NCBI GenBank assembly: GCA_964247055.1
Contig: OZ176053.1
Location: 9,610,001-9,674,000, forward strand
DNA: 64,000 nt
Reading direction: 5' to 3'
Source of the DNA: Paragordius varius
Taxonomy: Eukaryota; Animalia; Nematomorpha
Under the pieces are notes generated by a model, which was not told the DNA's origin, made no database searches, and saw nothing but the letters and a program-made list of their open reading frames with translations. Below are positions 8,679 through 57,254 of the stretch, piece by piece (positions within the stretch are counted from its first letter, which is position 1; every line of letters starts with the position of its first letter). Position numbers and translations under genes: made by a program.

Positions 8679-11600
8679 TTATATAGTTATTATAAATTTG
8701 CCCATTCGCGATTTGCATATTTGTGGTTTATATGCAACTAAATATTCCTTTCCTACCTCCAAAGTTAGAGGACCAAATTCGAATTCAAGACTTTCGGATC
8801 CCTAAATTATGTTAAAAAATAATATAATGTAATTATTTTTAAGAGTAAAAACCCTTAGCTTACGGGATTGTTCCGGATATTTTTGCCATCAATAATAACT
8901 TTTTCTGCAATGTCTTGCAAAAAGATGGAATAGGTAGCATTTGGATAGATTTGCAAATAATTGGTATGTATTTTTAGTGTGTCATTATAGACACATACAT
9001 AATCGCCTTGTAAAATATCTCTCTTTTCTATTAAAATATAGTAAAAAATATATCAATTAGTTATAGGGCAGAAACAAATGGTAAACATGTTCAATCGATT
9101 AACATATGAAACATGTTTAAAAATATTAAACGTTGCGATTAGTAAAAGAACATCGGCGCTTTGGTAGACCACACAATTGCAAATACGCTAAGCTCGAGAG
9201 TTAGTAGATGATCAACTAACTCAAACTTAACAAAAATTGGCGGAAACATATAACAAAAAGCAACGAGCACTGGATCAATAAACTCGGAAACTGGACAAAA
9301 TTTGAAAGAACGTCATATTGAAAATCGCAAAATTAGAAATCCTGCCTCAACCTCACGAAAGGAAATTATTTTCACATCGAATTGGGACAGTTGATGTAAA
9401 GTGGCTTCATTTTGTAAATCTAAGGCGAAAAAATCGTGGCTTTTGCCAAGCCGGTTCATCAACACCAGCAAATCGTTTTAGCAAGAAGGTTGCCTGTGCC
9501 CGGGAGAGCGGTATTGTGCATTATAAACTTTTAGAACTCGGTGAAACCGTATAAAACGCTATCCCCGACAAATTAAACCTAGCATTAAACTAAAAAAGAT
9601 CGGAATCGGCCAGAAGACAAGGCAAAGTTATTTTGCTAATAACAATGCTCCGTTTCACACAGCCAAATCGTGAGATTTCAAAATCACCTTAATGGATTCT
9701 TTCACATCCGCTCTCTCCTGGCGAATTTGACTAGTACGATTTTGAATTGACCACACCCTCGCAGAGGAGCACTTCAAAATTTTGAAGAAGTTAAAAAAAA
9801 ATGACTTGACTAATGGTTTTCCGCAAAATACAATCACTTTTTCTGGTACGGCATTTATATGCCTGAGAGATGGAAAACGTGTAGAGGCCGATGTATAATA
9901 AATTTATTGATTCCTTTTAAAATTACATTTTTTACCAAAAAATCGTTATGACTATACCTGGTAGTCTATTTTCGGTAAAATTTTTAATTAAATTAATGCA
10001 TTCAATAGAAGTTTTATACATTGAATTGTCAAATGATTTTTAAAAAGGGTGTTATATATTATATCCAAATCAATAATTTTTTTCTTAACTAAATTGTTGA
10101 TCAAACAGATATATTTGGCCAGTTTTAAAAACATAATATTTTTCACCGCATAATCGCATTTTTTAGGTAAAATATTATGCCAAGTACTCCCTTCCGAAAC
10201 AAACCCAAAATAAATCTTATTTAAGGAAGACGCTCACGATTAAAAATTAGTTTACGTGCTTTTTTCATACATTAATATTTATATAATGTATAAAAGGTAT
10301 AAAATTTGGTTAATACATAATTTTATACATTTTTTAAAATATATTAGCCTATATTTTTTTTCGCGACTCATTTAAACTGAAGCTATTAGCTATCTAATGA
10401 TCTCCTTAAATACAACAAATTTTATTGAGTACAGTATACTGATGCGAGTAAAAATGTCTTTGGACAAAATATTATAAAGTCATCTGCTAATATAAATTAT
10501 AATTATGTGAGCGACACATTCTCAAAATTTTATTTCAATTTTTTTAGAATATCGGTTATATATGTTGCTTGAATTTTGATGTAATTATTGAAATTGATGG
10601 TTTCATTACAAAAGTAAGTTTTACATCTCCTAAAAAATTACATCATTAAATAAGTCGCGTTTGATGATTTGATTATTACATTTGTAATAGAAGTGTTATG
10701 AATTTATTTCAATTGGAACTGGTTCTAGGTCTATTTTATGCCTTTGCTTCCGATAACCGATTTTTTATAAAAACGGTTTTTGATCAAATGATTCCGGCTT
10801 AGGAGCAAAGAATTCTAAACTCGGTTCCAATTTTAAATTTAAGGATGATGCATTATTTTGATATTTTCTAAAAAATCAAAAAACTTTTTACAATTACAGA
10901 AAAAACAAAAAGCTAGAATTCCCTGTGATAAAAATTAAAAAAGAGAAAACGATTAATATTATTTTTTGGAGTTTAGAACCGCGGTTCTATTTTTAGAAAC
11001 AGTTCCGAAGCCGTTTTTTGAAATTTAATTGGTTTCCAAAAATACTACTAAGTTGTTCTAGTTCCAATCCCTATATTTAATAATTAGATTAGAAAACCCA
11101 ATTTAACAATTTTTTGGCTGATGAAAATTATTTATTATGTATTACCATTCAGTGAGTTTCCATCGTCTACATATTTTAGGGATAAATAAGTTTTAAAAGA
11201 TATATTTTAAATAATTTTAACAAAACCAATAACATAATATGTTAAATCCAAATTATTTAAAGCTATATATTAAAAATCGGAAAATTATTTTTTGTAAAAA
11301 GAAGAAAAAGAAGGCCAGTATTAGAGGGGTTAATGGGTTCATTTATTTTGCCAGTAAGTAGCCCAGGGCTCGTGAAACATTCACTTGATTGTCAGCTTAA
11401 AGTGGGTTTTAAGAAAACTATAATGGAACCTTGATAAAATTTAAGTCCTTACCCTTTAGTATTAAAGGAAAAAAACTAACTTGTACTAAAAAATAGAACT
11501 AAGGAATATAAATATTTGTTTAGTTTTATAATTATTGTTTGAGGTTTTGTAATTTTTCCCAAAAATTAACAAAAAATCTTTTAATAACTTAGTCAAGCTG

Positions 11601-57000: not shown

Positions 57001-57254
57001 TATATTACCATATTCATTTTAAAGGCTGGTTATAAAGGTAAATTAACAAATTATATTTACCATATTCAACACAAATATATATTTAATTAAGTTATTAAAT
57101 TGAAATGGCGAAAATATGTGATGGTATAAAATCATTTGATCCATAAAATTGGATATTCACTAATACATTATATTTAAAACAATATTTCGAAAAAATAGTA
57201 ATCAAAGTTTATGTAAGTTTTAAAAAGTAAATTATTTACCGCCAGGAGGTAAGT
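42024..57254 (-). CDS. Gene B: unrecognised ~24-exon membrane-protein gene, paralogue of gene A. Exons high to low: [57240-57254, 56491-56579 tentative], 56213-56221, 56039-56155, 55932-55952, 55689-55712, 55616-55651, 55562-55585, 52873-52893, 52457-52606, 52014-52061, 49947-49970, 49836-49919, 48509-48589, 47579-47635, 47313-47336, 47137-47181, 47026-47061, 46864-46911, 46395-46499, 46114-46313, 45962-46079, 43054-43214, 42024-42158
   Basis: The spliced frame is open: DIADDAEVDAALAQW...DEPPPEW...MAEMDANNAQQE...GTSDEESDTEK...QKPNPKPIGPKGPNP...GCGSAGATALVSKVLSVIAGILFSAVATCLGIVFAALGAIFS...INKSDECIFIEIDIPTIVLNKGNCFNRK...FIVKDLLPGNYSITLQ...EILKDDYICVKN...YFHIYPDKQFKIYLQ...LEENKEYLIGYKPHDNCKVPMGQLIFIYKSH*. 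It matches gene A, including identical 24/45/36-nt and 118-nt exon sizes. The first exon is unresolved. Confidence 0.8.
44086..44862. repeat. Foldback element with ~150 bp inverted arms enclosing a hAT MITE and an RTE tail
   Basis: TATACCATTTCCCAGTCAATCGAAAC...GAAAAACACATTTATTGAATGA versus TCATTCAATAAATGTGTTTTTC...CGATTGGGAAATGGTATA. Confidence 0.7.
44535..44675 (+). mobile_element. Short 3' fragment of an RTE-like LINE
   Basis: Reads AKLKIEDAENRNNWKTAIK...ATFNSEDQQL*, followed by a (GAT)n tail. Confidence 0.55.
45096..45690. repeat. Foldback element with subterminal (AAGTTGGTCCTT)n repeats
   Basis: TATACCATTTGCACTTCAA..CCTTAAACACT versus AGTGTTTAAGG..TTGAAGTGCAAATGGTATA. About three GTTGGTCC units on the left and GACCAAC units on the right. 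Confidence 0.7.
47255..47305. repeat. (TA)n microsatellite, the longest of several (others at ~13141, ~19580, ~34305, ~57265)
   Basis: Direct reading. Confidence 0.95.
51612..51900 (-). mobile_element. 3' end of an RTE/BovB-like LINE in an intron of gene B
   Basis: Translates KLSYFGHIMRSNSLEKSLMLGKVSGTRKRGR*RIRWMDNI...LW, the typical RTE C-terminus, followed by a (CA)n tail. Confidence 0.85.
53444..54485. mobile_element. M1 palindromic MITE with eroded ends, in an intron of gene B
   Basis: Internal homology to the other M1 copies (GCGCAAATTTTG, GCGCGATAAAAA, GAAACGGTATAAAA and its reverse complement). Confidence 0.65.

Follow-up and report, generated by a model that had tools for sequence, protein, structure and literature searches.

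The question raised by this locus is whether a long run of very small, frame-neutral exons is a sign that a gene makes its variety by splicing. The locus lies in a 64,000-nucleotide (nt) window of the genome of the nematomorph Paragordius varius (C4:9610001-9674000, in an assembly of 110.6 Mb and 44 contigs), and comprises two minus-strand genes, here termed A and B, that a first-pass annotation had likened to the micro-exon genes (MEGs) of schistosomes. Our preferred reading, to which we give a probability of roughly 45%, is that A and B belong to a lineage-restricted family of 17 copies, which encodes an exported glycoprotein of ~800 amino acids (aa) that a Gly-rich hairpin holds at a membrane, with outward-facing beta-sandwich domains for binding and a spacer tuned by exon duplication, and that the splicing of these genes is mostly constitutive.

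Gene structure, as well as family size, selection and exon duplication, was read directly from the DNA; the exon chains of both genes were rebuilt from the genomic sequence, with junctions inferred from DNA only. Gene A comprises 36 exons (24126-8679, minus strand; 2382 nt, ~790 aa), and its introns are in phase 1 in 31 successive cases and then in phases 0, 1, 1 and 0. Gene B has 32 exons within the window and the same terminal phase pattern; its start lies outside the window, and a further N-domain exon is found at ~65.8 kb, ~1.8 kb past the window end. In both genes every internal exon up to the first C-terminal domain is of phase 1-1, giving a symmetric run of 30 consecutive exons in A and of 27 in-window exons in B. 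Fifteen exons per gene are 36 nt or shorter, accounting for 14% (A) and 15% (B) of the coding bases, and many introns are only 24-60 nt long. The proposal that these are two real paralogous genes on the minus strand was borne out, and the peptide motifs quoted in its support were all found on that strand and in collinear order. Moreover, all 20 exons listed for gene A exist as open AG..GT exons of phase 1-1 (the one given as 36 nt, at 15909, is more likely 48 nt, judging by its length in paralogues), as do 17 of the 18 listed for gene B. The exception is an 81-nt exon of gene B, for which no open phase 1-1 candidate with plausible splice sites could be found between the 84- and 57-nt exons. 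The first models were also incomplete, in that several micro-exons and the whole 5' part had been overlooked and the symmetric run is longer than stated. In gene A the overlooked exons are those of 18 nt at 13547 and 12891, the micro-exons at 21437 and 21326, and seven 5' exons (24126-22393); in gene B they are those of 18, 9 and 18 nt at 47548, 47454 and 47378, one of 12 nt at 46951, those of 15 and 45 nt at 57254 and 56535, and four 5' exons (62294-59830), all on the minus strand.

Such chains might be spurious, put together from chance AG/GT pairs in AT-rich sequence. In a control for chance, splice matrices trained on the other gene were used to count high-scoring short AG..GT pairs by length modulo 3. 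An excess of pairs whose length is a multiple of three was found on the gene strand only (11 versus 4 and 3 in the other two length classes for A, and 19 versus 4 and 5 for B); the counts on the opposite strand were 2/5/2 (A) and 6/6/5 (B), and shuffled sequences gave means of 4.8 and 6.0 with maxima of 7 and 12. Roughly one false candidate per kb does pass a loose score on the control strand, the 81-nt exon of gene B is unreal, and a few exons are weak (A 23256, B 56221). However, the confinement of the enrichment to the gene strand, together with the conservation of exon boundaries, lengths and peptides across paralogues under purifying selection, makes an artefact scarcely credible.

The first-pass annotation had asked for the size of the family, and genome searches made exon by exon identified 17 loci: three on contig C4, one on C2, one on C6 and twelve on C5 (within 9.69-10.31 Mb). 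At these loci the N- and C-terminal exons are separated by 16-47 kb and agree in order and strand. Ten copies besides A and B were modelled in part, and the C5 copy at 9.95 Mb was too degraded to trace upstream. The exon classes and their order are kept in nine further paralogues, running from an exon of 120-160 nt with a PP.EW-like end through a run of 21-33 nt exons, exons of 81-90 and 63-75 nt and one of 48 nt to the hydrophobic block; the five C-terminal exons in the paralogues have phases 1-0, 0-1, 1-1, 1-0 and 0. At least four copies (C4 9.68 Mb, C6, C5 9.95 Mb and C5 9.98 Mb) contain a frameshift or stop, although some of these may be assembly errors. A close paralogue of gene B lies at C4:9679500-9699499, with 92% identity in one exon and ~80% across introns. 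One of its N-domain exons is frameshifted, one donor is not GT and a 9-nt exon contains a stop, and it is probably a recent duplicate of B in decay. (Note that a segment of ~80 nt at 49590-49500, minus strand, inside a long intron of gene B, is 94% conserved between B and this paralogue. It was considered for the 81-nt exon and rejected because of stops in the usable frames; no other copies of it were found in the DNA examined, and it may be the remnant of an exon or have a regulatory role.)

We estimated the ratio of nonsynonymous to synonymous substitution rates (dN/dS) from pooled sequence, in pairs of paralogues rather than orthologues. Most pairwise values for the spacer and the C-terminal domains lie between 0.2 and 0.5: for the spacer, 0.19-0.46 in six of seven pairs and 0.77 in the other, and for the C-terminal region, 0.31-0.44 in six of seven. 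For the hydrophobic block, two close pairs exceeded 1, their intervals being wide, and the block is too short for a firm value. Because the exon classes are kept and dN/dS is mostly below 1, the family exons are coding and constrained. Thus, of the earlier description of a lineage-specific, fast-evolving surface family, what holds is a lineage-restricted, divergent multigene family without detectable relatives; the raised dN/dS that marks the mature region of MEG products was not seen.

What kind of protein these genes might encode is suggested by the order of its parts, which can be followed from the DNA: a signal exon, a basic domain, an acidic disordered spacer, a Pro/Lys linker, an amphipathic and Gly-rich hydrophobic helix, and beta-rich C-terminal domains. 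(Protein properties were computed with exon junction residues masked as X; exons, all on the minus strand, are given below by start with length in nt in brackets.) Exon 1 of gene A (24075..24126, phase 0-1) is a predicted signal peptide by hydropathy, being the best ATG exon, with a hydrophobic core, a good donor and a position directly 5' of the conserved N-domain exon. It is followed by the basic N-domain (22393..23535; ~200 aa, net charge +18, five sequons), whose exons lie at 23535-23350, 23256-23221 (uncertain), 22932-22849, 22815-22759, 22702-22619 and 22545-22393. This domain is the best conserved part of the family, with two of the gene A exons matching 12-14 paralogous loci at 34-65% identity, and it ends in RVKR in A and in the C6 copy. 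In gene B the N-domain exons in the window are 62294(87), 60816(57), 60150(84) and 59994(165) (59830..62294), the first lying beyond the window. The acidic spacer is ~210 aa long in A and B, Cys-free and of net charge -30 to -37. In gene A (14960..21437; low complexity, ~220 aa, net -30), where most of its exon classes recur in paralogues, it consists of exons 21437(15), 21326(21), 21136(39), 20715(138), 19993(21), 19927(21), 19872(30), 19814(27), 17812(21), 16268(87), 16151(72), 15909(48), 15775(66) and 15016(57); in gene B (49836..57254; ~205 aa, net -37) the exons are 57254(15), 56535(45), 56221(9), 56155(117), 55952(21), 55712(24), 55651(36), 55585(24), 52893(21), 52606(150), 52061(48), 49970(24) and 49919(84).

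The spacer leads into the part that may seek the membrane. In gene A the Pro/Lys-rich linker, amphipathic helix and Gly-rich hydrophobic segment (13279..13720) are encoded by exons 13720(102), 13547(18), 13470(9), 13426(18), 13371(24) and 13323(45), with an uncharged run of 24 residues and a Kyte-Doolittle 19-mer maximum (KD19) of 2.0. The corresponding stretch of gene B (47137..47635) consists of exons 47635(57), 47548(18), 47454(9), 47378(18), 47336(24) and 47181(45), with an uncharged run of 30 residues and a KD19 of 2.3. Hydrophobicity is marginal in most copies, and in two it is too low for a normal membrane span. The C-terminal ~280 aa are beta-rich. In gene A this region (8679..13226; ~285 aa, 10 sequons, six Cys) comprises exons 13226(36), 12891(18), 12848(51), 12770(132), 12041(188), 11809(118), 11166(21), 9027(164) and 8801(123, with the stop); in gene B (42024..47061) it comprises exons 47061(36), 46951(12), 46911(48), 46499(105), 46313(200), 46079(118), 43953(21), 43214(161) and 42158(135, with the stop). 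One C-terminal exon gave sub-threshold Pfam matches to Y_Y_Y or other Ig-like families in 8 of 11 copies (best E=0.0035), and both C-terminal modules carry an L-x-P/x-G-x-Y strand motif, which we take to be FN3-like; the two are probably FN3/Ig-like modules. Taken together, these features support the view that the family consists of secretory-pathway proteins with a membrane-seeking segment.

Which way the C-terminus points bears on a simpler alternative. The C-terminal region of gene A has 10 sequons where 3.7 are expected (P=0.001). Two Cys, each on a different exon, occur together in all 8-9 other aligned copies and are both missing from A, as would be expected for a disulfide. The sequon excess in A and the covarying Cys pair suggest that the C-terminus points to the extracellular side, such that both ends of the protein are probably outside. 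An ordinary type I single-pass membrane protein, with the N-domain and an acidic stalk outside, the Gly-rich helix spanning the membrane and the C-terminal domains in the cytosol, would account for the N-terminal signal peptide and for the single uncharged run of 23-30 residues found in most copies, with a KD19 of ~2.0-2.6 in 8 of 11. However, this topology would place the covarying Cys pair and the conserved sequons that follow the helix in the cytosol; in addition, the basic residues precede the helix rather than follow it, and KD19 is only 1.3-1.4 in two C5 copies. We consider a type I protein distinctly improbable.

The order of the parts (prodomain, RxKR, shield, amphipathic and Gly-zipper helix, beta-rich binding domains) resembles that of alpha-pore-forming proteins. 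By analogy, the product may be a latent, membrane-damaging secreted precursor, in which a convertase would remove the basic N-domain, the C-terminal beta-sandwiches would bind host cells, and the glycine-zipper helix would insert and oligomerise into a pore. The marginal hydrophobicity of the Gly-rich segment and the expansion of the family with frequent gene death are consistent with this idea, but exon-by-exon searches of Pfam, the PDB and protein libraries gave no match to a toxin sequence, the RxKR site could be read directly only in A and C6, and B and C6 have few GxxxG pairs. A pore-former therefore seems doubtful.

If the proteins are as described, what varies between them? One paralogue contains seven tandem units of exon plus intron, with exons 88% and introns 92% identical, and related exons number five in the C6 copy and three in another copy. 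Within the hydrophobic block the micro-exons split a single helix into pieces, and one intron of the Gly segment is absent in four C5 copies, where the peptide is still collinear. Such presence or absence with a collinear peptide is in keeping with introns having been gained or lost at Gly codons, a known process (PMC8001218), and not with the use of cassettes. (In the copy at C5:9839839-9839693, an in-frame intron of 30 nt interrupts what A, B, C2 and C6 have as a single exon; it is a candidate for a recent intron gain or intronisation.) Thus, the variation seen is genomic, consisting of tandem exon duplication and of intron gain and loss. Here the frame-neutral layout can be seen to serve the duplication of exons between copies, so symmetric micro-exons by themselves are no evidence of splice variation. 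Two things usually merged in the idea of a MEG, frame-neutral exon layout and splice-generated variation, are in this way separated.

A MEG-type system, in which each gene would yield many variants by leaving out different sets of its symmetric spacer exons, could be combined with any of the other readings. Combinatorial skipping of symmetric exons is established in schistosome MEGs (PMC4350168). Genes A and B offer the material for it, with their 30 and 27 consecutive frame-neutral exons, 15 exons of at most 36 nt each, and a product with a signal peptide and disorder; moreover, introns of 0.5-2.7 kb flank several spacer exons or blocks of exons, so that skipping of blocks would be possible. 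Against this, the micro-exons make up only 14-15% of the coding sequence, and the symmetry takes in the hydrophobic helix as well as the folded N-domain, two regions that the loss of an exon would harm. In addition, 19 of the 30 micro-exons of A and B together adjoin an intron of at most 60 nt, a length that as a rule promotes intron definition and intron retention rather than exon skipping. The spacer also shows no excess of dN/dS, selection being purifying rather than positive in most pairs. We therefore regard splice mixing as unlikely. The claim that the N-terminal half could be re-spliced was misplaced in any case, because the region concerned is the middle of the protein and the N-domain precedes it.

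In our preferred reading, then, both ends of the protein would lie outside the cell. The Gly-rich segment would hold the protein on or in the membrane as a hairpin, the C-terminus not being carried across, and might self-associate through GxxxG faces, while the FN3/Ig-like domains at the C-terminus would bind a partner or a surface. The basic N-domain would pack against the acidic spacer and, in some copies at least, might be cut off at RxKR. The exons would mostly be spliced constitutively, and the all-phase-1 layout would permit the spacer to change in length between copies by exon duplication or loss, so that the repertoire would be generated by the gene family and not by splice mixing. Several points weigh against this reading. 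What is put forward for topology, splicing and fold is a proposal, and cleavage and function are likewise inferred. In B and C6 the segment reaches the hydrophobicity of a normal transmembrane helix, and the insertion-energy scale used is rough. The FN3/Ig assignment depends on matches below threshold, and the sequon excess is significant in A only (P=0.35 in B; 0.29 and 0.08 in others). Beyond the two copies in which RxKR can be read directly, two more are compatible with it, it is unconfirmed in nine of those on C5, and in B the exon concerned lacks it; the DNA pattern for RxKR plus donor occurs at background frequency and is uninformative. It is quite unlikely, if conceivable, that several of the alternatives hold at once, such that these are undescribed animal precursor proteins that insert into membranes like pore-formers or fusogens, are activated by a convertase and aimed by C-terminal beta-sandwiches, and are diversified in the spacer both by exon duplication between the 17 copies and by MEG-like skipping, in a parasite that is not a flatworm. 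Should the animal be parasitic and its host's membranes be the target of the Gly-rich segment, the family would be a directly testable candidate for host interaction.

Searches for relatives were made exon by exon, which limits their sensitivity. With one N-domain exon as query, no homologue outside the source genome was found in a set of 5.8 billion sequences. An exon profile from 14 copies gave five weak, repetitive matches in a set of 1.84 billion, including bacterial Ig/FN3-repeat proteins; these were rejected as orthologues because their scores are sums of weak stretches. Exon-wise queries of the ESM Atlas, the PDB and Pfam gave no confident match, a likeness of the N-domain to PEBP, spotted by eye, was dropped for want of Pfam support, and no natural read-through ORF was found that spans a whole C-terminal domain. 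An AlphaFold model of a single exon reached a predicted local distance difference test (pLDDT) of 56, too weak for a fold search, and a search of the literature yielded no account of genes of this kind from nematomorphs. The family is real and undescribed, and its gene design resembles known kinds. Being invisible to ORF calling and without a detectable relative, it represents an expanded set of unannotated secretory genes from an animal lineage about which little is known.

The window itself is 27% GC, without CpG depletion, and holds other genes and repeats. A gene for a Slingshot phosphatase with long low-complexity inserts lies at 2298-8150 (plus strand). Over near the full query length it is only 23-27% identical to any named animal protein, which argues that the source animal is highly divergent; neither the Slingshot nor the enolase search named a close relative. 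An enolase gene lies at 32760-39130 (plus strand; last exon placed only in part), whose first introns are 25 and 22 nt; in contrast to genes A and B in the same window, its intron phases are mixed, with phase 1 in 4 of 10. (In ERZ25074360, a public assembly that looks unrelated, two called coding pieces of the enolase are likewise only 27 nt apart.) Just upstream of enolase, a PHD-finger ORF at 31031-31456 (minus strand) is followed by a reverse-transcriptase-like stretch, which we take to resemble the C-terminal end of a reverse transcriptase of the RTE/CR1 type, from elements lacking long terminal repeats; the two are probably a retroelement fragment. One family of AT-rich interspersed elements of ~900 bp with internal inverted arms, similar to miniature inverted-repeat transposable elements, has copies at 18600-19520, 28680-29520, 37860-38810, 53550-54360 and 58040-58920, in introns of both genes and between genes. 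A second, more GC-rich family, with internal repeats of ~160 bp and ~500 bp plus a poly-G/C tract, has copies at 24998-25585, 39579-41200 and 62458-63933, one of them inside a gene B intron.

How, then, does the family compare with known systems? Schistosome MEGs consist mostly of exons shorter than 36 bp, encode products of ~10 kDa and yield variants by alternative splicing (PMC4671649, PMC4350168); their introns are long (PMC10526429). The family shares with them a signal peptide, runs of small symmetric exons, disordered and amphipathic segments, a lack of outside homologues, and expansion driven by duplication (PMC4671649, PMC4350168). Whereas variable splicing and raised dN/dS are documented for MEGs, the family's proteins are multi-domain and of ~800 aa, with many introns of 24-60 nt in their genes and dN/dS mostly of 0.2-0.5, and no sequence similarity between the two was detected. 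The MEG-like description thus holds for the symmetric small exons, whose lengths are multiples of three, and for the signal peptide (in A only, by hydropathy), and fails for a majority of coding sequence in exons of at most 36 nt, for a small product without folded domains and for raised dN/dS; by these three criteria, the family is not a schistosome MEG. Similar in composition are genes of the SmVAL6 type, in which a folded domain is joined to a MEG-like stretch of symmetric micro-exons (PMC4350168), but here no SCP/VAL match was found, folded regions lie on both sides of the micro-exons, and a membrane-seeking segment is predicted.

Aphid bicycle genes likewise form a large, divergent, clustered family with many small exons of nearly a single phase and are invisible to sequence search (PMC9168663); under the convention of that paper, in which codon position 2 opens an exon, their phase may correspond to phase 1 as used here. 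Unlike them, the present family shows no CYC motifs in exon alignments and has a Cys-free micro-exon region, and it comes from a different animal group. Outside flatworms, Tb-MEG1 of the myxozoan Tetracapsuloides bryosalmonae is a micro-exon gene for a surface-exposed protein (PMC7923790, PMC8481699), likened here by description only; it is a single described gene, whereas the present family has 17 copies. In class 1-1 modular extracellular FN3/Ig proteins, introns of phase 1 follow the signal peptide, fall at Gly codons and flank the beta-sandwich (PMC8001218), and the second C-terminal domain of our family is flanked by phase-1 introns, as class 1-1 modules are (PMC8001218). Unlike in those proteins, however, the phase-1 introns of A and B also cut domains, the spacer and one helix into pieces of 9-60 nt, and the domain match is below Pfam cut-offs. 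The family thus resembles MEGs, SmVAL6, bicycle genes and Tb-MEG1 in gene design only.

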